A DNA stretch of 64,000 nt, taken from the IMG/VR virus record IMGVR_UViG_3300017971_000190, positions 1 to 64,000 of that record; one strand, written 5' to 3'. The translations under genes were made by a program, and so were the position numbers. Under the pieces are notes generated by a model. That model did no database searches. It was not told the origin of the DNA and saw nothing but the letters and a program-made list of their open reading frames with translations. Below, in pieces: positions 1 to 12,426 of this stretch; positions within the stretch are counted from its first letter, which is position 1; every line of letters starts with the position of its first letter.

Positions 1-212
1 ACAACTGAAATGTAATTGATGTTTGCCTTTGATATGGCTGAGGCCTACGTTGAGTAGGAGAGTTCTACCGGTGGGGTCGGGTACCGGGTAGACAACTGAA
101 ATGTAATTGATGTTTGCCTTTGATATGGCTGAGGCCTACGTTGAGTAGGAGAGTTCTACCGGTGGGGTCGGGTACCGGGTAGACAACTGAAATGTAATCG
201 ATGTTTGCCTTT
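1..212 (+). repeat. 91-bp tandem repeat, 2 full copies plus a 30-bp partial copy
   Basis: 1-91 equals 92-182; 183-212 repeats the first 30 nt with one mismatch; the unit contains hairpins cctac/gtagg and tctacc..ggtaga. Confidence 0.9.
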
Positions 213-213
213 C

Positions 214-333
214 GTGGGTTTACACAGACTGTGGCTCGCAGAATCTGGGGAAGTAATTGGCGGTGAAGGAAGAAAATGAGCTTGGGGCATCTGGTGAAAC
301 ATCCAGACCGACTTTAACTGCCCGCCAACCCAC
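214..333 (+). ncRNA. Unidentified ~120-nt structured RNA, copy 1 (family A)
   Basis: Closed by gtggg/cccac; shares cagactgtggctcgcagaatctg and other blocks with 1307-1426; compensatory helix ttggcgg/ccgccaa. Confidence 0.75.
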
Positions 334-341
334 ATAATTTT

Positions 342-432
342 TGAGGGGCTGATGACGGTCAGAGATTGCGACTTTAAACCACAAGTCGCTAGAATTAATA
401 ACTGTGGGTTCGAGTCCCACCCCCTCGTTCCA
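342..432 (+). tRNA. Aberrant tRNA-like RNA (10-nt anticodon-position loop containing CTTTAAA)
   Basis: Acceptor tgagggg/cccctcg, T-arm gtggg-TTCGAGT-cccac, encoded CCA; helix gcgact/agtcgc has a 10-nt loop. Confidence 0.5.
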
Positions 433-716
433 GCAAGTTCCTAGAACATCTAAGAAGCTGTGATTGTATTGGGTCAGTGGCCTGTGCAGTACACAGTGGA
501 GACGGTTCGTTTAAGGAACGAGCTGCCTTTAGTCGAGATCCCGCGTTGGCGACTAGAGGGTTGGCAGTACCAATGCAGGGGTGCGAGGTGGGTAAGTCGG
601 TCTGGTAGATTTTACCTGTTTGTAATCCAGCGACACCACTTCAATAAATGGGACTAACAGGTCTCAACCATCTTTCGTTGTCACAAGTCGGTTGAGTATT
701 CACAAGATGACAACTA

Positions 717-781
717 GGAGTGAGGACACTAGCTTGAGTGCTTCAACGGTTTCGGCTCAAGTCCATAGCCCTTCTCCGAAA
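717..781 (+). ncRNA. Stem-loop/pseudoknot element (cttgag..ctcaag family)
   Basis: Stem 733-738/756-761; loop tttcgg complementary to downstream ccgaaa 776-781. Confidence 0.4.
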
Positions 782-966
782 AATTGATTGAAAACCGTTT
801 ACGCCTACACGGAGTTGGGGGTTCTACAGTTGTAGGAAGAGCTTAAAAACCCAAAGTAACAGGTGGGGCTACCGGGATGTATCTTTCCCTTTCAGTGTAA
901 GCCTGTTGCGGTAGGGAGAGTGGTGGACACGCTTGCCCCAACCCTCTACCCGAATTTTTCGTTTTT

Positions 967-1233
967 GGTAAATGGAAGGTTGGCCTAAAAGCAGCCATCC
1001 TTTAAAGAGTGAGGCGAAGACCTGTTGCTCGGATTTTTGCTGTGAGAGGCTTGGGTACGGTTAATCTCACAGGTTCCACGCGAGTCAAAAACGTAAAGTC
1101 GCTTTTTACGTAAATAGATTTGGGAGTGGCTCTCCCTAGCGTGCTGAAACAGGAGTACTTTCGGTTAAGTGAGGAGGCACCCCGGAGACGGTAAGGCCGA
1201 ATCCCTCTTTGGCGTAGCAGCACACCATTTACC
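967..1233 (+). ncRNA. 23S rRNA GTPase-associated centre (H43-H44, L11-binding domain) mimic with a 201-nt insertion
   Basis: 975-1010 + 1212-1225 align without gaps to E. coli 23S 1055-1104 (GAAGGTTGGCCTAAAAGCAGCCATCCTTTAAAGAGT|GCGTAGCAGCACAC); closed by a 9-bp stem ggtaaatgg/ccatttacc. Confidence 0.85.
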
Positions 1234-1306
1234 TTTTTCAGCCCCGTACCAAGTGTCCTATGGAGTTCGGGTTTAAATACTCCTCTTGGTACGCATTTTC
1301 AACCTT

Positions 1307-1426
1307 GTGGGTGTACTCAGACTGTGGCTCGCAGAATCTGAGGCAGTAATTGGTAAGAGATGAAGCTAATGAGCTTGACACCTGTAAAATAAGTTGCAGG
1401 GTGACTAAAACTGCTTACCAGCCCAC
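1307..1426 (+). ncRNA. Unidentified ~120-nt structured RNA, copy 2 (family A)
   Basis: Paralog of 214-333; helix changed to tggtaag/cttacca; closed by gtggg/cccac and followed by a T-run. Confidence 0.75.
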
Positions 1427-1514
1427 ATTTTTTGAGTTGCCCCCTAAGCACTGGTCTAACGATCCTGCTTAGGTGATCGGGGAGTGGATGGTACCTGAAG
1501 CTCCCCACTTTTTT

Positions 1515-1601
1515 GGAAGATGAACGGGAAGGCCGGGCATTAGTGCACAGTGTCGTACCGGTTCGACTCCGGTTTGGAAATCCAAGTTCTTGGCATCTTC
1601 C
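1515..1601 (+). ncRNA. tRNA-like RNA with T-arm but rearranged architecture
   Basis: 8-bp closing stem ggaagatg/catcttcc; T-arm accgg-TTCGACT-ccggt followed by an extra hairpin ttgga/tccaa before the 3' strand. Confidence 0.5.
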
Positions 1602-1708
1602 TTGAAAAACCGCCAGAGGAATTACACGTTATAATCTGGCCTCTACAGAGAGTAAAAAATGTGAGGTTGTGAGTGCTTTTCCAAAAACTCTCACCCGACA
1701 TAAGTTGG

Positions 1709-1804
1709 ATTTAGTGTCTTGTGCAGTCATAGATGGGAGGCGTTGAACTCTGGTCACCAGGTTGGAGGGAGCCAACAGTGAAATACCATCCATTGGCATT
1801 AAAT
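1709..1804 (+). ncRNA. 23S rRNA L1 stalk (H76-H78) mimic
   Basis: TGTGCAGTCATAGATGGGAGGCGTTGAA...GGAGCCAACAGTGAAATACCATCC matches 23S ~2109-2179 (UGUGUAGGAUAGGUGGGAGGCUUUGAA...GGAGCCGACCUUGAAAUACCACCC); 10-bp H76-like stem atttagtgtc/ggcattaaat. Confidence 0.85.
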
Positions 1805-1982
1805 TGTATAAATACAACAATTTGTGTTGGGTAATTTTCAGTTGCAACCCCTGGGTTCTGAGGTATTTGCCGGTAGCCTGCAGAACAGGGAAGTCCCGTA
1901 GCCGGATGGGTTTGGTAGTAGAACCTCTGACCCTTTTAATTGAGTCAGTAGCTGTACACTAAGAAAAAACTACCACTTTTTC

Positions 1983-2050
1983 GGAGCCTGTAATTTAAAT
2001 GGAAAAAGAAGCGTTAGCCTATTTCTAGGCTCGAATCCTAGCAGGTTCCT
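1983..2050 (+). tRNA. Degenerate tRNA-like RNA (8-bp acceptor, CTCGAAT T-loop)
   Basis: ggagcctg/caggttcc plus ctagg-CTCGAAT-cctag; D and anticodon arms weak. Confidence 0.4.
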
Positions 2051-2192
2051 TAAAGGGTGTAGTCTCCCTCCTGGGGAAACATTTCCTGGGTTATTTGGCC
2101 ATAAAAGACTACAACGCAAATCGAAAGTGCTTGTTGAATTGATTTGTGTAATCCGAACAAGCAGTTGTGAGTGCTTCTATAAACTCTCATTT

Positions 2193-2296
2193 GTGAGGTT
2201 CCTGGTTGTCCAAGGATGTAAACAGGTGAGTGCTTGGGTGTGTATTCTCGCTCAAGACTGGGCAGGCGAATTGACGCTAGCGAAGCTTGGCCTCAC
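2193..2296 (+). ncRNA. Closed structured RNA
   Basis: gtgagg/cctcac closing stem, internal cttggg/ctcaag stem, followed by a T-run. Confidence 0.4.
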
Positions 2297-2304
2297 ATTT
2301 TTAA

Positions 2305-2414
2305 TCCCTATGATAGAGGATCTACTGATCATTCTAGAACGGTCGGTTGGCAGAAAAAGCTTGTTGGACCCAACTTGTTTTTCTGTTGTCCTGGTTCGAT
2401 CCCAGGATGGGGAA
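2305..2414 (+). tRNA. Aberrant tRNA-like RNA with a very long variable arm and TTCTAGAA loop
   Basis: Acceptor tccctat/atgggga; D-arm taga-gga-tcta; 6-bp stem ctgatc/ggtcgg with a 10-nt loop; variable arm cagaaaaa/tttttctg; T-arm cctgg-TTCGATC-ccagg. Confidence 0.55.
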
Positions 2415-2451
2415 CTAAAGCACTTGGTTGTGAGTGATTCCTAAAACTCTC

Positions 2452-2575
2452 GGTTGTTGGTATACCAGGGTACTAACAATCTTAACACCTGGAAAAGCGT
2501 TTTGGTAGTTATCGTCAATAAATTGCTCTACTTGAGTGACGCCGGGCTCTCCTCAAGTGGTAAAACCCGGCAACC
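2452..2575 (+). ncRNA. Structured RNA with H-type pseudoknot
   Basis: ggttg/caacc ends; stem cttgag 2531/ctcaag 2552; loop gccggg 2541 pairs with cccggc 2566. Confidence 0.55.
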
Positions 2576-2587
2576 TTTTTATTTTTC

Positions 2588-2616
2588 TTGACTTCCTTCT
2601 TTTAGCACAGCATAAT
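2588..2616 (+). promoter_or_regulatory. Sigma70-like promoter
   Basis: TTGACT-17-CATAAT upstream of the ORF at 2649. Confidence 0.55.
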
Positions 2617-2648
2617 AATTGGTGTTAAACAGCTAAAAGGAGTCACAA

Positions 2649-3140
2649 ATGGTGCAGCAACACAAAATCCGAGAAGGCGTCCCCTACACCGATGGTAAAT
2701 CCATCAGAGTTATTGTTGATACTGAAGCTGGGAGTTTTGAGAACGGCACACCCGTGTATTATAGAACCACCCGAGACCTTTTCAAGGAAGTACACGAATG
2801 CTCTTTGGGAGCGTTTGCTCGGTGGGCAACACTGCAACACGAAGAGCTGTCAGATCAAATCGTACTGGCTATTCGCCCAAATAACGGAGCAGATGTTCTC
2901 CCAGACAATCTAGAAACCAGGGTGACAAGGATTTTGAAGACCGAGATTCTGAAAATTGAAGCCGGTTTGGGAACCGTTTCTTTTAATAAAAACGTAATTC
3001 CAGCCAAACTGCTGAGACAGTTGATTCAGGATTACGAAACACTCTACGGCTCAGAAACGCTTAATATCGAAGTAGTTTTCAGTCTTTTCCTTGACGGTGC
3101 GGTGGACCGCACGGAATTCCGGTTTAAGTCTGAACAATAA
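2649..3140 (+). CDS. Hypothetical protein (163 aa)
   Basis: ORF with SD aaaaggag. Confidence 0.75.
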   Translation: MVQQHKIREGVPYTDGKSIRVIVDTEAGSFENGTPVYYRTTRDLFKEVHECSLGAFARWATLQHEELSDQIVLAIRPNNGADVLPDNLETRVTRILKTEILKIEAGLGTVSFNKNVIPAKLLRQLIQDYETLYGSETLNIEVVFSLFLDGAVDRTEFRFKSEQ

Positions 3141-3230
3141 AGGGAGTTCGAGCTAGCGCTTCTTCCTGAGGGGCTTTGGTCCTGAAAATTCTAGCACACA
3201 CACGCTTTTATCAAGAAAGGAGATAGGATT

Positions 3231-3266
3231 ATGAAGCGCATTCCTGTTAACCTAATCAACCTCTAA
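3231..3266 (+). CDS. Putative 11-aa mini-peptide MKRIPVNLINL
   Basis: Strong SD aaaggag upstream of ATG. Confidence 0.3.
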   Translation: MKRIPVNLINL

Positions 3267-3297
3267 CCCTCCCACTTAAAGCTGAGTTAGCACTCAG

Positions 3298-3368
3298 GTC
3301 CGGTTGGTGGACGTACCAGAGGAAGTATTCTGTGTTCGTTGGTACCGACACAGGGTATTAAACCGGAC
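3298..3368 (+). ncRNA. Closed structured RNA
   Basis: gtccggtt/aaccggac stem; internal tattctgtgt/acacagggta helix. Confidence 0.45.
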
Positions 3369-3372
3369 ATCT

Positions 3373-3444
3373 GGCCCCATCGTTCAATGGTTAGGACACA
3401 GGATTTTCATTCCTGAGATCGGGTTTCGACTACCCGTGGGGTCA
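3373..3444 (+). tRNA. tRNA-Glu(TTC)
   Basis: Cloverleaf; anticodon arm cagga-ttTTCat-tcctg; T-stem has T53-A61. Confidence 0.9.
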
Positions 3445-3474
3445 ATAAACTATTAAAAGAAAGGTCATACTACA

Positions 3475-3663
3475 ATGGTGGAAAAGGAAAACAGTTTCTA
3501 CAAAGAACAATTTTCTATTTTGCAAAGGCGTCTTCGTGGTTCCATAGAAGAAGCAAAGAAGGAAGGAGACACGAAGAGAGAGATTGCTCTTCTGAGGGTA
3601 GGTTGTGACGTTGCGAACATTTTGAAGGGTGTGAACATAAATTACAACCCTCCTGGTTACTAA
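3475..3663 (+). CDS. Hypothetical protein (62 aa)
   Basis: ORF with SD aaagg between tRNAs. Confidence 0.6.
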   Translation: MVEKENSFYKEQFSILQRRLRGSIEEAKKEGDTKREIALLRVGCDVANILKGVNINYNPPGY

Positions 3664-3670
3664 AAGTTTA

Positions 3671-3743
3671 GGGCTCGTCGTCTAATTGGTAAGGCTCCAA
3701 GCTCATAACTTGGTCATTCGGGTTTCGATCACCCGCGAGCCCA
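3671..3743 (+). tRNA. tRNA with CAT anticodon (Met or Ile2)
   Basis: Cloverleaf; ccaag-ctCATaa-cttgg; G1-C72 paired, so not an initiator; T53-A61. Confidence 0.88.
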
Positions 3744-3826
3744 CTATGTTACTGACTACCTGAGACCGCAGCTCAAAGGTTAGTAGCAGAACACCTCAAT
3801 TAAGTGACGGTAGAACACTGAGGTGT

Positions 3827-3988
3827 GTGCAAGCAGGTACTACCGGGAAACTATTTTCTACCCTGTAACCACGTAGTTCCGAGGAGCACAAAAGAATGAT
3901 CCACCTTTTGTCCCTACCTGGAACTTAGCGTAGTTTCCCGCGTCTTTGGCGAAAGCCGTACTGCGTTGAGGATCAAACCTGCTTGCAC
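3827..3988 (+). ncRNA. ~160-nt multi-helix structured RNA
   Basis: 12-bp closing stem gtgcaagcaggt/acctgcttgcac; nested cgggaaacta/tagtttcccg, agttcc/ggaact, acaaaag/cttttgt, ggc-GAAA-gcc. Confidence 0.65.
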
Positions 3989-4000
3989 TTTTTCTTTTTT

Positions 4001-4082
4001 GCCCACATGGTGGAACAGGTAGACACGCGAATTTTAGGTGTTCGTGGCTAACGCCGTGGGAGTTCGAGTCTCTCTGTGGGCA
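4001..4082 (+). tRNA. tRNA-Leu(TAG)
   Basis: Class II cloverleaf; cgaat-ttTAGgt-gttcg; variable arm; A73. Confidence 0.92.
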
Positions 4083-4217
4083 CTAGGTCATTCTAATTTT
4101 AAGTCCTGGTAATGGTGCTAGGCAAACGTGACAAGCTTTCCATCCTTCACGTTCGAGAAAAGTTAGAATGACCTTAAATTTGTTGGGAGTTTGAGCTAAA
4201 CAAAAGAGGTACTTAAA

Positions 4218-4550
4218 ATGATTTTCACCTATGAGATAAAACGTCACAGTGTGGATTTCCTTTTCGAGGACGGCAGCTTTCATTCAATAGTGGTGGGACA
4301 AGGGCCTGGTTACTGGTACCGAATCATTTCAAAATTGAGAGAGTTGGGAAAAGAGATAAATCCGGAAGACTTTGACCAGGGTATAGAACGTCTATACTAC
4401 GATTACGCCACCGAGGAACTGAGAGGAAAAACAGAAAAGCAGAAAGAATTGGGATACTTTACCTGTCCCCAGTGCAACGTGATTTATCCTTGTCGTTCTT
4501 TCAAATATCAAAATCCTTGCGACAACTGTCGTTATGTAAAAATTACCTAG
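4218..4550 (+). CDS. Hypothetical protein, C-terminal CxxC..CxxC Zn ribbon
   Basis: ORF with SD gaggt. Confidence 0.7.
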   Translation: MIFTYEIKRHSVDFLFEDGSFHSIVVGQGPGYWYRIISKLRELGKEINPEDFDQGIERLYYDYATEELRGKTEKQKELGYFTCPQCNVIYPCRSFKYQNPCDNCRYVKIT

Positions 4551-4639
4551 TCACTTCGTGGTTAGGAGTGGGGCAATGGAATTGAGAAACCCCCTAGAGG
4601 TTATTGGGCAAAAAAGAAAGCAGGAAAGATAGATTAATA

Positions 4640-4700
4640 GTTCACATGGTAGTTTAGGTACCAGCGGGAAACCGTGTAGGTTCGAGTCCTACTGTGGGCA
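4640..4700 (+). tRNA. D-armless 61-nt derivative of tRNA-Leu(TAG)
   Basis: Acceptor gttcaca/tgtgggc, TTTAGGT retained, variable hairpin gcgg/ccgt, T-arm gtagg-TTCGAGT-cctac; the 3' end matches that of 4001-4082. Confidence 0.65.
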
Positions 4701-4703
4701 CTA

Positions 4704-4874
4704 GTTGGTAGTTCTGGGAGACCTTGGTGAAACACTCCATGGGAACCCACGGTAAAAACGAGACGTGGTAGGTTGTGTAGGTAACTACAGAGCCCTTCTA
4801 TCTAGTTACTCCTTGAGGGTAACGGGGGTAGTCGGATCTTGTTTTTAGAAACAAGGCCCACCTGAACTACCAAC
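4704..4874 (+). ncRNA. ~170-nt structured RNA
   Basis: 11-bp closing stem gttggtagttc/gaactaccaac with several internal hairpins. Confidence 0.6.
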
Positions 4875-5059
4875 AACTTCTTCCTAAGCACTTCGTGTTT
4901 GGGAGTGGGGCACTGGCATTTTAAAGTCCAACTCCATGTGGTTAGGGCAAACCAGTTCAAGACTTGGGCCTTTTGGCTAGCCCAGATGTATTTCTGATTG
5001 CCGACAAGTTACAGGCTGGTTGATACCAATTACCACGAAAGAAAGAGCTAGCCACTATG

Positions 5060-5144
5060 GGAAGGATGACCGAGCGGCTGAAGGTACACGCCTGCTAAGC
5101 GTGCGTAGGGAAACCTACCGAGGGTTCGAATCCCTCTCCTTCCG
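5060..5144 (+). tRNA. tRNA-Ser(GCT)
   Basis: Class II cloverleaf; cacgc-ctGCTaa-gcgtg; G73. Confidence 0.95.
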
Positions 5145-5248
5145 ACGCAGTTGGCCCCGCTGCACATCCTATCGAGAATAATTACCACAGATGTGTGTAC
5201 ACAAAGATGCTAGGATCTTTATTTGTGGTGGTTATTCTAGGGGCAATT

Positions 5249-5378
5249 GGCAGAGTGGCGAAACGAAAAGAGGCCCATACTAGTTAACCTCTTTCTTTGG
5301 TAAACGCGCGGTAACTCCGTGATTGGTCAATCAGTTAACTGGTTCACTATCTTCCAGGTTCAAATCCTGGCTCTGTCA
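5249..5378 (+). tRNA. tRNA-like RNA with a hairpin inserted in the D-loop and a degenerate anticodon arm
   Basis: ggcagag/ctctgtc; Leu/Ser-type D-arm tggcgaaac..tggtaaacgc split by aaagagg/cctcttt; T-arm ccagg-TTCAAAT-cctgg. Confidence 0.55.
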
Positions 5379-5461
5379 AGATGCTATCGCATACACTGCC
5401 TTCAAAAAGTGTATTGACAAATTAAAAAATGTTGTCACAAGACTACTAGGAGGTATTAATC

Positions 5462-5632
5462 ATGGAAAGACTTATTTATCGCTTTATTCCTAACGTTGAG
5501 ACCTTAATTGAGCAATACGAGTTGGAAGGTTTCGAGGTGCGGGGATACAGTGAGTACAGTTCTGACGGGATTCCTAGGGTGGCTGAGATGGTCAAGTGGG
5601 TTTCTGATAAACCGTCTCAAGAAAAGGAATGA
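5462..5632 (+). CDS. Hypothetical protein (56 aa; below the ORF-track cutoff)
   Basis: SD aggaggt, ATG..TGA open frame. Confidence 0.65.
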   Translation: MERLIYRFIPNVETLIEQYELEGFEVRGYSEYSSDGIPRVAEMVKWVSDKPSQEKE

Positions 5633-5657
5633 TTTTTGATTTTCTTCTCTTTCTTTT

Positions 5658-5732
5658 CGGGGAATAACTCAGTCTGGTAGAGTGCCTGCTTTGGGAGCAG
5701 GAAGTTCGCAGGTTCGAATCCTGTTTCCCCGA
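5658..5732 (+). tRNA. tRNA-Pro(TGG)
   Basis: Cloverleaf; C1-G72; cctgc-ttTGGga-gcagg. Confidence 0.95.
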
Positions 5733-5798
5733 TTAAGTTTATTTTTCAAAGTACACGAAAAATAAACTACCTCACTGGTACAGAGGTTAAAGTACTGT

Positions 5799-5959
5799 GG
5801 ACAAGTGTTGTGCAGAGGGTAGCACAGAGAGTAAGCTAACGAAAAGCGAAACCTGCCGTGCGAGAAGAGCAGGTCCACGGTGTAATCGGAATGCCTCTAG
5901 TGTGGTGCACCACAGCTAGTTTTAATGCCAATGAGAGGTTCGATTCCTCTCCTTGTCCA
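5799..5959 (+). ncRNA. tRNA-like termini enclosing a ~125-nt pseudoknotted insert
   Basis: ggacaag/cttgtcc plus T-arm gagagg-TTCGATT-cctctc; acctgc/gcaggt stem whose loop ccgtg pairs with cacgg. Confidence 0.55.
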
Positions 5960-5981
5960 AATGTTGGGTTGGTACTTTACC

Positions 5982-6180
5982 AACGACAACAGCTTTCTTC
6001 GGGAGCCCGGAAGAAAGGCTTAACCAGCGCCAGTGAGCTTCAATGGGTCGTGCACACACCGCGTTGAAGATGACTCTGGGGTAGTAGGAAGGTGCACAGA
6101 ACGGCAAACTAGGCTTTTCCTAGGTTGGCTTCTAGGCACCGATCCCTCCTTCAGTGGTGTGTGGGGCTTGGTTGTTCGTT
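5982..6180 (+). ncRNA. ~200-nt structured RNA with GTGCAC loop
   Basis: acgacaac/gttgttcgt ends; agctttcttc/gaagaaaggct hairpin; cttcaa/ttgaag stem; gtgcac at 6050 and 6092. Confidence 0.5.
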
Positions 6181-6219
6181 CACACAGGGCTCAATTTTAA
6201 AAATTATTAAAGGTGAAAA

Positions 6220-6417
6220 ATGAAGCTAACTAAAAAACAAGAAAAATTGGTAAAAGAGGTTATTGGAGACGGCACCGATTTTCCAAAATTTACAAACGAC
6301 CCTTATGTTAATCACAGAGTAGACATGCTTGTTTGTGACTGTCCACCTTGGGAGGAGTTGAGTAAGGAAGAGCAAGATTTGTATTTTGAGGAAGTAGAAG
6401 CTTCTAAAATGGAATAA
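6220..6417 (+). CDS. Hypothetical protein (65 aa)
   Basis: ORF with SD aaggtg. Confidence 0.65.
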   Translation: MKLTKKQEKLVKEVIGDGTDFPKFTNDPYVNHRVDMLVCDCPPWEELSKEEQDLYFEEVEASKME

Positions 6418-6438
6418 TTATTAATAGTATTGTTTCTT

Positions 6439-6510
6439 TGAGGCGTAGGCAAACGGTAAGCCACGAATTTTTGGTGTTCGGCATTGGAGGTTCGAATCCT
6501 CCCGCCTCAA
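6439..6510 (+). tRNA. tRNA-Gln(TTG)
   Basis: Cloverleaf; T1-A72; cgaat-ttTTGgt-gttcg. Confidence 0.88.
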
Positions 6511-6512
6511 AA

Positions 6513-6662
6513 ATGAAAAAAGAAAAACCTTTGAAGGATTTACTGCCGAATCCATGTTGTTGCAGTTTTCCCATGGAACCATTGAAAGTAACAAAACCAC
6601 TTAGAGAAAAATTGTGGAAGTGTCTCAAGTGTGGTAAGTTGATCTATAAATACAAAAACTAG
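6513..6662 (+). CDS. Small Cys-rich hypothetical protein (49 aa)
   Basis: ATG after tRNA-Gln; CC..CxxC. Confidence 0.45.
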   Translation: MKKEKPLKDLLPNPCCCSFPMEPLKVTKPLREKLWKCLKCGKLIYKYKN

Positions 6663-6665
6663 TGC

Positions 6666-6755
6666 GGAGTGTATAGTGTTTAAATGGCAACACGGCTAGT
6701 GGCTAACGGGTCATACCTGCCAGGCAAAAGTGGGTTCAAATCCTGCAACACTCCA
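6666..6755 (+). tRNA. Degenerate tRNA-like RNA
   Basis: ggagtgt/acactcc, D-arm gtgtt/aacac, TTCAAAT loop; anticodon arm poorly paired. Confidence 0.4.
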
Positions 6756-6824
6756 TATAATGTTTAGCGAGAGACAAGCAGTTGGGCTCTCGTGGCGACT
6801 TTGTAGAGGGTGTACAATTTTTCT

Positions 6825-6897
6825 GGGCGATTAACTCAGTTGGCAGAGTGCAATCTTTACGCGGTTGAAGTCACAGGTTCAAACCCTGTATCGCCCA
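6825..6897 (+). tRNA. tRNA-Val(TAC)
   Basis: Cloverleaf; caatc-ttTACgc-ggttg. Confidence 0.9.
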
Positions 6898-6905
6898 AAA
6901 AGAAG

Positions 6906-6934
6906 TTGACTTTACCACTACTCTGTGTTAGCCT
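6906..6934 (+). promoter_or_regulatory. Sigma70-like promoter
   Basis: TTGACT-17-TAGCCT with TG upstream of the -10. Confidence 0.45.
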
Positions 6935-7072
6935 TTTCTTAATCCGTGAGAGATCAGGCTCAACTGCTCTCACGGGGTTGTCAACGGGGTGGGCCAATCC
7001 CCTGACGGCGGGAGCTGCGTTTCCTTTTGGAAGCAGTCTCCCGTTTTAATTTTAGAAAGGAAACAAAGCACC

Positions 7073-7273
7073 ATGGTAGAAGAAAAAGAAACCTACGAAG
7101 CTATCAATTTTGGTTGGGACGGTGATGATTTTGTAACCGAAGATGTTACAGGCAAAATTCGTCGCTATCACGGTGCCAAAATTACCGACGTTAAGCGAGA
7201 GTGTTCTGTGGAAGTTCAAGACGGTAAAGTGATTGGACACTTTTCGTTTCAATTACCGAAAAAGAAAGGCTAA
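7073..7273 (+). CDS. Hypothetical protein
   Basis: SD aaagg; start re-assigned to ATG 7073. Confidence 0.65.
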   Translation: MVEEKETYEAINFGWDGDDFVTEDVTGKIRRYHGAKITDVKRECSVEVQDGKVIGHFSFQLPKKKG

Positions 7274-7277
7274 GAGA

Positions 7278-7565
7278 ATGACTATGGTAAAAGAACACGA
7301 ACTTAAGTATGGGGTAGATGGTTGCCTCTTAACCTGGCAAAACCCTTTTCCTGAAGAAGTAACCTGTGCTTGTTGTGGAAAAGAAGGTGCACGTTTAGCT
7401 TTTGTTCTACAAGAATCAGGCAAAAAGGAGCACGCTTGTAATTTATATCAAAACGATCCGGATGGAGAGGGATTTTGGGTGCACGATTCAGCTGCTTTTG
7501 CAGTTTATTTGTGCAGAGATATTAATTGCCCTGAAAAAGCTACCGCTAAGTGGAATCAAGCTTAA
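7278..7565 (+). CDS. Hypothetical Cys-containing protein
   Basis: ORF directly after the previous gene. Confidence 0.65.
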   Translation: MTMVKEHELKYGVDGCLLTWQNPFPEEVTCACCGKEGARLAFVLQESGKKEHACNLYQNDPDGEGFWVHDSAAFAVYLCRDINCPEKATAKWNQA

Positions 7566-7574
7566 AATATTTTT

Positions 7575-7647
7575 GGGTCCTTAGCTCAGCTGGTAGAGCA
7601 CCGGACTTTTAATCCGTAGGTCTTCGGTTCAAACCCGAAAGGACTCA
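7575..7647 (+). tRNA. tRNA-Lys(TTT)
   Basis: Cloverleaf; ccgga-ctTTTaa-tccgt. Confidence 0.92.
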
Positions 7648-7699
7648 TTAGTTCACCCATCAGAATAGTAAGTTTTAAGGAGAAAGATCATGAAGAAGA

Positions 7700-8377
7700 T
7701 TGTGCCTTCAAATTGTTGTAAACAGAATCAAGTATTTAAACTTAAACGAAAGAAGAACTGTTTTGAAAACATACCCAAGTATGGTTTATCCTCCCTTTGG
7801 AGGATTGAAGGAGTACCTTCACACCTTTGCTAAGTTGGACGGCAGCAATCTCAGATTTGAATGGAGCAAGAAAAAAGGTTGGTACAAAGTTGGAACCCGG
7901 CATCGTCTTGTAGACGAAAGTGATTCTATTTTTGGAAAAGCTCCCCTTATTTTTCAAGAAACTTTGGCTGACCAGTGCGAGAAAATTTGTAGAGATAATC
8001 GTTGGCAGAGAGCTGTGATTTTCTGCGAGTACTATGGACCACAAAGCTTTGCTGGCCTGCATGAAATTGGAGGTACGATGACGCTAACGGTTATAGACGT
8101 AGCTCCTTACAAAAAAGGCATTTTACCACCTACTGATTTTCTAAAACTGTTTGGAGAATTAGGGCCGCATTACCTGGGATACTTGAAGTGGAATTTTAAT
8201 TTCATAAATCGAGTTCATCAGGGTTTAGAGCCTGAAGCTAGTTTTGAAGGAGTAGTTGGTAAAGCTAAAGGGAAAGGAAATACACTACTTCTCTACAAAA
8301 CCAAAACTCAAGCCTGGAAAGATGAAGTTAAAAAACGATACAGTAAGAAGGAAGCAGAAAAAATAATTCATAGCTAA
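7700..8377 (+). CDS. ATP-dependent RNA ligase (Rnl2-like nucleotidyltransferase)
   Basis: Motifs KLDGSN (I), FCEYYG (III), FEGVV (IV), YKTK (V). Confidence 0.75.
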   Translation: MCLQIVVNRIKYLNLNERRTVLKTYPSMVYPPFGGLKEYLHTFAKLDGSNLRFEWSKKKGWYKVGTRHRLVDESDSIFGKAPLIFQETLADQCEKICRDNRWQRAVIFCEYYGPQSFAGLHEIGGTMTLTVIDVAPYKKGILPPTDFLKLFGELGPHYLGYLKWNFNFINRVHQGLEPEASFEGVVGKAKGKGNTLLLYKTKTQAWKDEVKKRYSKKEAEKIIHS

Positions 8378-11303: not shown

Positions 11304-11627
11304 GTGTGTTATTTTCAGGACATTGCTGTAAAAAAAGTTGTAGTAGAAGTCATTTCCGAGCTGGTGGGAAAGCGTAAGCGCTTCACCGGTTGGGAAGTGA
11401 ATCAAAAATTACAAAACCGCAAAGGCTTTGCTCACCTTCCCCCACCCTGGCAGATCAGCTCCTATGTACGGGAACTGTTTAATGGGCATAACAGTGCTTT
11501 TTCAGGTTATGCCTGTTATCCAGTTGATGGAGGCCCCTTGCTCTATTTCCCAATTCCGTACTATGTGAGAAATCATGTCGAAAAAATCCAAAAAGAAATC
11601 CAAACGGAAGGCCAAACCGAAAAGTAA
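11304..11627 (+). CDS. Hypothetical protein
   Basis: SD aaagg, GTG start. Confidence 0.6.
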   Translation: MCYFQDIAVKKVVVEVISELVGKRKRFTGWEVNQKLQNRKGFAHLPPPWQISSYVRELFNGHNSAFSGYACYPVDGGPLLYFPIPYYVRNHVEKIQKEIQTEGQTEK

Positions 11628-12426
11628 CCCTTCTGTTTCGATGCCCAGTGTTCAGGAACTTTTTGGTTCCAGTTGTCGTTATCGCCTTAGCAGTTCTTTT
11701 CGTGGACCTCAATTAGAAGGTTACGAATTCTTATGTGCTTTCGAAAACAAAGTACACTCTTACCACACCCCCACAATGCAGAAGCTTGGCAATATTAAAC
11801 AAGCTTGGCATGGTACCAATAAGGCTGCACTTAAAAGCATTGCTGTGGATGGATTACTCACGCCTTTTCAGCGTCGAAAGCGAGATCGCTGGACTAGCAT
11901 ACACGGTATGTTTGGACCAGGAATTTATTTAGCTCCTAACATTGAAAAAGCGGCTATGTTCGCATGGCAGCATAAGCATTTGAAGTTTGTTCTTCAATGC
12001 TATGTTGCTTTGGGAAAACCTCATTTTGCTACTCAAACAGGAAACTATTACGAAACAGCTGAAATGGAAGACAAGCATAGTGTCATAGGTGGAAGAGGAT
12101 CACTGACTGGAGCTTGGGGTGGTAGACTCTTAAACGAAGAGTGGGTAATTTTCGATAATCAACAAGCTACTGTAGACATGGTACTCGTGTACAGATGCGT
12201 GGAAACTCCTAAGGCTACCCCATTTCGAGGCTCGATTGGACGACGATTTTATAACAGTAGTAGAGAACCACAAGGTGTTGTTCGTTACCACCCTTGCAAA
12301 CGAAATGGCAAGCTTTGTCGCAATGCTTTTGGCTCTGGTGGCTGTGTGGAAAAAGGTATAACTACTGGAGCGAGTGCCTTTTCAGATTACTGCAGAGATT
12401 ATCAAGTATCCTTGATTCACAAATAA
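11575..12426 (+). CDS. PARP-like (H-Y-E class) ADP-ribosyltransferase domain protein
   Basis: WHGT, GMFGPGIYLA, VALGK, NEEWVIF motifs. Confidence 0.8.
   Translation: MSKKSKKKSKRKAKPKSNPSVSMPSVQELFGSSCRYRLSSSFRGPQLEGYEFLCAFENKVHSYHTPTMQKLGNIKQAWHGTNKAALKSIAVDGLLTPFQRRKRDRWTSIHGMFGPGIYLAPNIEKAAMFAWQHKHLKFVLQCYVALGKPHFATQTGNYYETAEMEDKHSVIGGRGSLTGAWGGRLLNEEWVIFDNQQATVDMVLVYRCVETPKATPFRGSIGRRFYNSSREPQGVVRYHPCKRNGKLCRNAFGSGGCVEKGITTGASAFSDYCRDYQVSLIHK

Follow-up and report, generated by a model that had tools for sequence, protein, structure and literature searches.

The locus considered here raises the question of whether an RNA that folds as a tRNA, and combines a minimal D loop with a CUA-containing apical loop and an oversized extra arm, is a decoding tRNA, in particular an amber suppressor, or a tRNA-like molecule kept for a different purpose. 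The element lies at positions 2305-2414 of the window, by which we mean the whole stretch of 64,000 nucleotides analyzed, namely the first 64 kb of a 221,679-nt phage contig of IMG/VR (39% G+C; CheckV completeness estimate 63%). The phage is without a close cultured relative, its family-A DNA polymerase being at most 25% identical to that of any GenBank phage, and it recurs, identical across the element region, in four further assemblies from different samples (L010, L011, L012 and L014). The sequencing runs in which this sequence was found are all of DNA.

Every pair of the element was checked by script. On the plus strand, the 5' strand of the acceptor stem (TCCCTAT, 2305-2311) pairs at all seven positions, one of them G.U, with 2407-2413, and is followed by the 2-nt linker GA (G8 A9, 2312-2313), by a D-like hairpin of 4 bp with the 3-nt loop GGA (2314-2324) and by an anticodon-like hairpin (2325-2346) in which 6 bp, two of them G.U, close a 10-nt loop (2331-2340). 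This loop contains TTCTAGA at 2332-2338 and shrinks to 8 nt (UUCUAGAA) if a flanking A/C mismatch is counted as closing; the word TTCTAGA is neither enriched nor depleted (count of 20 vs. 14 expected). Between the anticodon-like hairpin and the T stem there are 44 nt containing a 39-nt hairpin, the long extra arm (2349-2387, plus strand), which occupies the position of the class II variable arm and has ~15 bp: a stretch of 10 bp, then a bulge, a single pair, a 2x2 internal loop and a further 4 bp below the apical loop GACC. The T arm (2390-2406, plus strand; 5 bp, 7-nt loop TTCGATC) abuts the acceptor, the 3' strand of which (ATGGGGA) ends with the discriminator A at 2414 and without encoded CCA (2407-2414, plus strand). 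The linkers of 2 nt and then 0-1 nt, the zero gap between T stem and acceptor and the placement of the extra arm have the lengths of a real (class II) tRNA, and the G.U pairs used in the stems assign the fold to the RNA level and to the plus strand. The structure at 2305-2414 is real and exceeds what chance pairing would produce. The earlier note on this DNA had described four well-paired arms, a minimal D loop, an 8-10-nt loop centered on CTAG and a ~45-nt variable arm far longer than in tRNA-Leu or tRNA-Ser; this description holds throughout, with the acceptor, D-like, anticodon-like and T stems verified pair by pair and the variable region of 44 nt exceeding class II arms, which range from just over 10 to about 20 nt.

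Standard tools do not recognize the element as a tRNA. ARAGORN at default settings makes no call at 2305-2414, the Rfam tRNA model finds no match there even at E<=10, and deletion of the long arm in silico does not elicit an ARAGORN call for the window's copy either. The features of a canonical tRNA are present in the 7-bp acceptor, the 5-bp T stem abutting it and the 7-nt T loop of the form TTCRANY. Instead of the canonical 5-bp stem and 7-nt loop (Y32 U33 NNN R37 N38), however, the anticodon-like hairpin of the window's copy has 6 bp and 10 nt; the canonical D arm (U8, A14, G18 G19, loop of 7-11 nt) is replaced by one with G8 and the loop GGA; and CUA at positions 34-36 of a 7-nt loop is absent from the window's copy, occurring only in the relative considered below. 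The extra arm is placed and paired as in class II tRNAs, but it is about double the longest known. The element lacks the canonical tertiary core, because G37 follows A36, position 8 is G and the D loop has 3 nt. The cloverleaf of the window's copy is predicted at -35.0 kcal/mol, 3 kcal/mol above the optimum, in which 2314-2322 would pair with 2327-2336 and the D side would take up half of the TTCTAGA loop; the ensemble probability of the anticodon-like stem is ~0.05, as compared with ~0.9 in the relative.

This relative, a 2.4-kb ENA contig (L015, with the near-twin L016) of ~82% nucleotide identity, is the only diverged one that was compared. Its copy of the element (L015:234-342) keeps all five helices at ~78% identity with the window, and a covariance model built from this copy alone retrieves the window's copy at 75.7 bits (E ~6e-16). 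In the two-sequence alignment 93.8% of the cells are paired, vs. 45-54% when the partners are slid. Two-sided changes affect five pairs, of which three belong to the anticodon-like stem and two to the long arm (C-G to U-A and U-A to C-G), and two further pairs have switched between G.U and Watson-Crick, a covariation that comes from two independent sequences with an alignment fitted to the structure and is therefore suggestive, not statistically strong. The 5' acceptor strand of the relative reads TCCCCAT, so that the G.U of the window becomes G-C; in its D-like hairpin one U-A pair becomes U.G, and its long arm has 17 bp vs. the ~15 bp of the window. The anticodon-like stem has been almost wholly replaced and is still paired, TTCTAGA being the only part of the hairpin left unchanged, and the T arm and the 3' acceptor strand are identical. 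The apical loop differs in size, 10 nt in the window and 7 nt in the relative, where a G-C pair closes UUCUAGA in the register U32 U33 C34 U35 A36 G37 A38. With its long arm intact, the copy of the relative likewise receives no tRNA call; with the arm deleted in silico, ARAGORN at default settings reports it as tRNA(cta). Elsewhere, neither 66 other loci nor 37 whole jumbo-phage records yielded a copy of the element to the covariance model, whose next-best matches were ordinary tRNA-Asn genes at ~25 bits, and pattern scans of IMG/VR and the JGI metagenomes returned nothing beyond the window's own record. Searches with neighboring proteins gave further relatives, the nearest of which carry P0005, P0124 and P0126.

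The origin of the element can be traced through its 3' part. The 24 nt formed by the T arm and the 3' acceptor strand recur without a difference in the canonical tRNA-Asn(GTT) genes of eight phage contigs of IMG/VR, and this 24-mer is absent from ~185,000 prokaryote genomes (GTDB). The identity extends, after a 2-nt gap, into the 3' strand of the tRNA-Asn anticodon stem, which corresponds to the 3' base of the long arm of the element; the base of this arm (GCAGA / TCTGT) resembles the tRNA-Asn anticodon stem and also matches the 3' half of the tRNA-Asn D arm. Besides the 24-nt identity there is a phage contig (L082) in which the spacer motif located after the element comes after a canonical tRNA-Asn, and the 221-kb contig itself yielded no canonical tRNA-Asn; the element is therefore apparently a phage tRNA-Asn gene that has been rebuilt into a five-helix cloverleaf. 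We also considered an attP site, in which the 3' part of a tRNA is kept for integration, and rejected it: the 5' acceptor strand and the internal helices covary, the stems require G.U pairs of the plus strand, and the 24-mer has no prokaryote match.

The interpretation that we tentatively favor, giving it slightly less than an even chance, is that the element is a selected tRNA-like RNA, derived from tRNA-Asn and processed as tRNAs are, of which the window's copy would not be an ordinary decoder. Selection would have preserved its shape after the rebuilding of the tRNA-Asn gene. We infer that the RNA would be transcribed from the plus strand together with the neighboring tRNAs and structured RNAs of the island described below, and that its ends would be produced by tRNA-processing enzymes, with RNase P cutting at 2305, a 3' nuclease trimming near 2414 and the host adding CCA; a T-rich leader and the lack of encoded CCA are common to the element and all 11 canonical tRNAs of the phage, and no gene for a CCA-adding enzyme was found in the 221-kb contig. 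The window's copy would be a non-decoding tRNA mimic because G8, the 3-nt D loop, the weak stem with its 8-10-nt loop and the ~15-bp extra arm misfit a decoder. It might serve as a handle for tRNA-processing or tRNA-binding factors, also punctuating the long transcript of the island, or as a decoy or ligand of which the conserved UUCUAGA loop would be the part that is read. Against a pure processing handle, the TTCTAGA loop would not be needed, yet it is the best-conserved part of its hairpin; against a mimic in general, the loop geometry of the relative, exact with CUA, points to decoding, and the linkers are those of a tRNA. Probably, the lineage has passed through a tRNA of the amber-suppressor type, or the copy of the relative still is one.

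There are precedents for RNAs of this kind. In the tRNA cluster of T4, the stable RNAs called "species 1/2" are non-decoding tRNA mimics that are processed by tRNA enzymes. As in other such mimics, namely the YrlA Y RNAs of bacteria and phages (PMC4201824) and the tRNA-like domain of tmRNA, the acceptor/T module of the element is kept and the anticodon part remodeled; these mimics are substrates of RNase P and of the CCA-adding enzyme and are encoded beside tRNAs or RNA-repair genes. YrlA is circularly permuted with respect to tRNA and bound by Ro60, whereas the element ends at its acceptor stem. For this reason, and since the contig has no Ro60 (TROVE) gene and Rfam families of the Y RNA and tmRNA type have no match at 2305-2414, identification with a Y RNA was discarded. 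The element also resembles allo-tRNAs and the irregular tRNA-like polycistrons of soil metagenomes in being non-canonical and missed by standard tools (PMC5389517; PMC7609411). Some of those irregular genes form five-stem junctions or have extra loops; they are clustered, their anticodons may be those of stop codons, and their use in translation is doubtful (PMC5389517; PMC7609411). Allo-tRNAs differ in having 8/4 or 9/3 acceptor/T stems, unlike the 7/5 of the element, which is phage-borne and apparently derived from tRNA-Asn.

Comparison with bacterial class II tRNAs (Leu, Ser, Tyr) and tRNA-Sec brings out a similar mixture of likeness and divergence. The likeness lies in the five-helix cloverleaf with an extra arm between anticodon and T stems, in the 7/5 acceptor/T stems and in the canonical T loop. 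Class II tRNAs have a base-paired variable arm between positions 44 and 48 that exceeds 10 nt and spans about 10-24 nt (PMC7609411), in contrast with the 44 nt and 15-17 bp of the arm region of the element, which departs from them also in its 3-nt D loop, G8 and, in the window, 10-nt anticodon-like loop. The marks of tRNA-Sec are an 8/5 domain, a 6-bp D stem with a 4-nt loop and UCA; the acceptor/T stems of the element are 7/5, its D stem has 4 bp below a 3-nt loop, UCA is absent, and the Rfam tRNA-Sec model does not match at 2305-2414.

Among the alternatives, the one that fares best, though we regard it as unlikely, is that the element functions as an amber (UAG) suppressor bearing an oversized variable arm: a host synthetase would charge it, and it would allow partial or timed read-through of UAG. 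The earlier note had proposed CUA as the anticodon, and in this respect the relative is the stronger witness: its 7-nt loop presents U33, CUA and a purine at 37, and its copy without the arm is called tRNA(cta). Conservation of TTCTAGA while its stem drifted, the class II geometry of the linkers and the presence of CUA tRNAs in other jumbo phages that have the same ligase-like gene (see below) also speak for a suppressor. The synthetase would have to ignore or tolerate the anticodon, our guesses being SerRS, which would recognize the long arm, or LeuRS, which would recognize A73. For the window's own copy the proposal does not stand as well, since its loop has 8-10 nt, its stem is weak (~0.05) and ARAGORN does not call it; a G37 that follows A36 is unusual in any case, and G8 and the 3-nt D loop are further obstacles. 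Amber suppression is more plausible for the copy of the relative than for that of the window. We know of no natural decoder with a 15-17-bp extra arm. None is described in PMC7609411.

The genome, moreover, would have little use for a suppressor. Standard-code ORFs of at least 120 aa cover 78% of the contig, and their stops (n = 184) are TAA in 104 cases, TAG in 44 and TGA in 36; TAG also terminates 52 of the 224 ORFs of at least 100 aa, so that, as an ordinary stop, it closes 23-24% of the long ORFs and is dispersed along the contig. Reading a stop as sense lengthens ORFs least in the case of TAG, below TGA and TAA, and the ten same-frame ORF pairs that are interrupted by TAG either have starts of their own or are spurious. 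A weak trend in favor of suppression is that the next in-frame stop lies slightly nearer after TAG (median of 6 codons, vs. 8-9 after other stops; p = 0.06). No gene with in-frame TAG and no read-through candidate was found in the 221-kb contig, which also lacks genes for release factors (RF-1 domain) and for synthetases of the PylRS/PheRS (PF01409-type), GlnRS/GluRS and class IIb types. (One candidate for TAG read-through, at 140401 on the minus strand, was rejected because it consists of two neighboring ORFs that are separated by 12 nt and of which the second starts with TTG.) From its sequence, the phage uses the standard code, and its genome has neither a demand for TAG suppression nor a sign of recoding.

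Known suppressors depart from the element along the same lines. Phage amber-suppressor tRNAs share with it CUA in the apical loop, a location in a phage tRNA array and the lack of encoded CCA (10.1101/2021.08.26.457843; PMC10879173), and the copy of the relative has their 7-nt loop geometry. Those of TAG-recoded phages, however, reside in genomes with in-frame TAG (10.1101/2021.08.26.457843; PMC10879173), and phage suppressors are canonical class I tRNAs with A37, whereas the element has a non-canonical body, G37 and a standard-code genome. In phage tRNAs associated with a theta (HDV-like) ribozyme, the ribozyme folds as a nested double pseudoknot and has its cut site adjoining the tRNA 3' end; a scan at the 3' end of the element (2400-2600) found no such fold with the features of L3, P1.1 and J4/2, a weak negative obtained with a home-made descriptor. 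The likeness to tRNA-Pyl that had been suggested is real with regard to CUA, the 6-bp anticodon stem and the tiny D loop, and can be extended to G8, which occurs in the Desulfitobacterium form (PMC7609411). It breaks down elsewhere: in the element 2 nt, not 1, separate the acceptor stem from the D stem, the T loop is canonical (TTCGA) and the D loop contains GG, where tRNA-Pyl has neither T-Psi-C nor G18G19, the variable region has 44 nt rather than 3 nt, and the contig is without a PylRS-type gene. The broader proposition of a five-armed tRNA active in translation, derived from tRNA-Asn, bearing the 15-17-bp extra arm and minimal D arm, charged by the host and causing partial UAG read-through, with triplet decoding in the relative and possibly four-base decoding here, appears to us a shade more doubtful than the amber suppressor itself.

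Another possibility, which we judge improbable, is that the tRNA-like fold is an internal module of a single structured RNA of ~400 nt (roughly 2190-2590) from which it would not be excised. GOLLD and ROOL are large phage-associated RNAs that neighbor or embed tRNAs. Here, conservation with the relative spans the whole of 2190-2586 and includes hairpins outside the element that covary. The 5' flank (2190-2304, plus strand) is structured: RNAalifold identifies local hairpins with two-sided changes at two pairs. Pairing of this flank with the 3' trailer is possible (approximately 2229-2239 with 2415-2425), as is pairing with more distal segments, where one-sided changes preserve the pairs. The trailer (2415-2481, plus strand), the first 42 nt of which (2415-2456) are identical in the relative, comprises a spacer motif (2427-2457; repeat families D6/D7) and then a hairpin with the loop TACCAGGG (2452-2481), again with two pairs changed on both sides. 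The block is closed by a terminator-like hairpin, GCCGGG...CCCGGC followed by a T run (2541-2587, plus strand), which is read from the sequence and conserved in the relative; a promoter-like site for the next ORF follows at 2588-2616 (score 10/12), and in our reading the element would stand at the end of a transcription unit. The long-range stems, on the other hand, show no two-sided changes, the stem between flank and trailer being invariant, and neither GOLLD, ROOL nor any other large RNA of Rfam is matched. The leader and trailer, furthermore, resemble those of excised tRNAs, and the spacer motif also occurs between ordinary tRNAs in L082. This motif, made of GTTGTGAGTG, TT and AAACTCTC, has three copies in the island (1666-1696, 2164-2194 and 2427-2457) and could be either a site of processing or a small hairpin. 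(It is also found at L082:98-125, after the canonical tRNA-Asn of that otherwise dissimilar 70-kb phage contig.)

Decay of a tRNA-Asn gene into a neutral pseudogene, possibly still transcribed and decorated with chance hairpins, seems to us more improbable still. It would account for the silence of the tRNA finders, for the several truncated or odd tRNA-like remnants in the array, for the better folding of the window's copy into a non-cloverleaf structure and for the restriction of the element to one narrow lineage, with none in 37 other jumbo-phage records. Yet all helices are kept at ~78% identity by the five two-sided changes and two wobble switches, and the copy of the relative has a fold z-score of -4.4. 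Plain decay is further argued against because the anticodon-like stem has turned over and is nonetheless paired, while the loop, the T arm, the acceptor and the 42 nt of trailer are unchanged. The earlier contention that this is not simple decay is thereby strengthened.

Finally, a quadruplet (+1 frameshift) decoder reading CUAG or UAGA with an expanded loop seems to us extremely improbable. The loop would have 8 nt, the size in classical frameshift-suppressor tRNAs, if the A/C mismatch closed the stem, but on thermodynamic grounds it either has 10 nt or disappears into a different fold. Since the loop of the relative has 7 nt, the expansion lacks conservation, and no gene requiring a +1 shift was found; the four-base CUAG anticodon also put forward in the earlier note is not supported. 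The nearest candidate for a frameshift target, the 163-aa ORF just downstream of the element (2649-3140), is a fusion of two genes that are separate in the relative (L015:590-1254), with no Pfam or PHROG match for either. It was rejected, since what splits the two genes of the relative is 65 nt of inserted intergenic sequence, which brings a stop, a ribosome-binding site and a start of its own, and not a frameshift.

If the element is only a mimic, it adds a further case of a phage rebuilding a tRNA gene into a new fold, in which the part read by processing enzymes has been kept and the rest remodeled. Were it to decode, it would stretch the known limits of the tRNA architecture accepted by the bacterial ribosome, introduce amber suppression in a phage without recoded genes and offer a ready natural scaffold for the engineering of orthogonal tRNAs. 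The setting is unusual as well, an island of translation-related RNAs that includes a tmRNA, a look-alike of the 23S L1 stalk and many tRNA-like elements.

This island, almost free of ORFs and rich in structured RNA, covers the first ~8 kb of the window (1-8000) and 2.7 kb upstream in an assembly of the same phage that reaches further (L010:4618-15000, ~10 kb). It contains eight canonical tRNAs. In its upstream part lie the tmRNA (L010:5028-5403, 123 bits; tag ANDNDVPMAVANAA) and a tRNA-Leu(CAA) (L010:6952-7030), after which there is a weak match of the group I intron type (L010:7070-7295, 29 bits). The fragment resembling the L1 stalk of 23S rRNA (1697-1831, equivalent to L010:9049-9183) matches model positions 2109-2265 at 49.5 bits (E 7e-13) with its core GGGAGGC...GGAGCC...UGAAAUACC intact, and may be an L1-binding rRNA mimic or a captured piece of rRNA. 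A much weaker match, to the L11/GTPase center, is seen at about 975-1070 (21 bits).

Good T arms and acceptors are combined with odd bodies in at least seven further non-canonical tRNA-like elements of the island (342-428, 1510-1584, 1983-2050, 4640-4700, 5249-5379, 5864-5958 and 6667-6755). That at 342-428 has a 7-bp stem with an 8-nt loop; that at 4640-4700 is a 62-nt paralogue of tRNA-Leu with intact acceptor and T arms, in which the anticodon arm has been replaced by a GAAA-tetraloop hairpin (GCGG-GAAA-CCGU); and in that at 5249-5379 the D loop is interrupted by a hairpin, the "anticodon" loop measures 5 nt and the extra arm 27 nt. A weak match to the Rfam tRNA-Sec model falls at 343-426, away from the element. 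As far as the comparison of sequences indicates, the tRNA genes of this lineage evolve in modules. The class II tRNA-Leu(TAG) at 4001-4083 has a counterpart in the relative (L015:2339-2412) with the same acceptor stem and UAG and a variable loop of 4 nt, and the tRNA-Glu is identical to that of the relative in its 5' half, its anticodon stem and T arm being replaced with compensation. A candidate HDV-like (theta-type) ribozyme at 4079-4169 would consist of a 7-bp P1 with G.U as first pair, a 9-bp P2, a 3-bp P3 and a 6-bp P4, with UCC in L3, GG after P1 and CGA in J4/2, and would cut 4 nt inside the 3' terminus of the tRNA-Leu(TAG); its first 30 nt are identical in the relative, and it could be due to chance. 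At the very start of the contig (1-212) there is a 91-nt tandem repeat in two exact copies and a partial third; the L010 assembly has one copy fewer, and therefore the assembly probably broke in the repeat.

Downstream lies the ligase-like gene (7781-8377), which encodes a protein of 198 aa with a KxDG motif (invariant KLDGSN) and has more than 380 homologues in huge phages, some of which carry the Pfam RNA_ligase domain; the protein of the window itself has no Pfam match. In other phages this gene is often found beside those for RtcB, Ro60 (TROVE), PARG and Thg1. In the window, a PARP-domain protein is encoded 3 kb downstream of it (11575-12426). Two jumbo phages with the same ligase-like gene have two canonical CUA tRNAs each (L033:15669-15836 and L054:19121-19888), and the canonical CUA tRNAs of other jumbo phages have a CUCUAAA loop with A37, in contrast with the G37 of the element.
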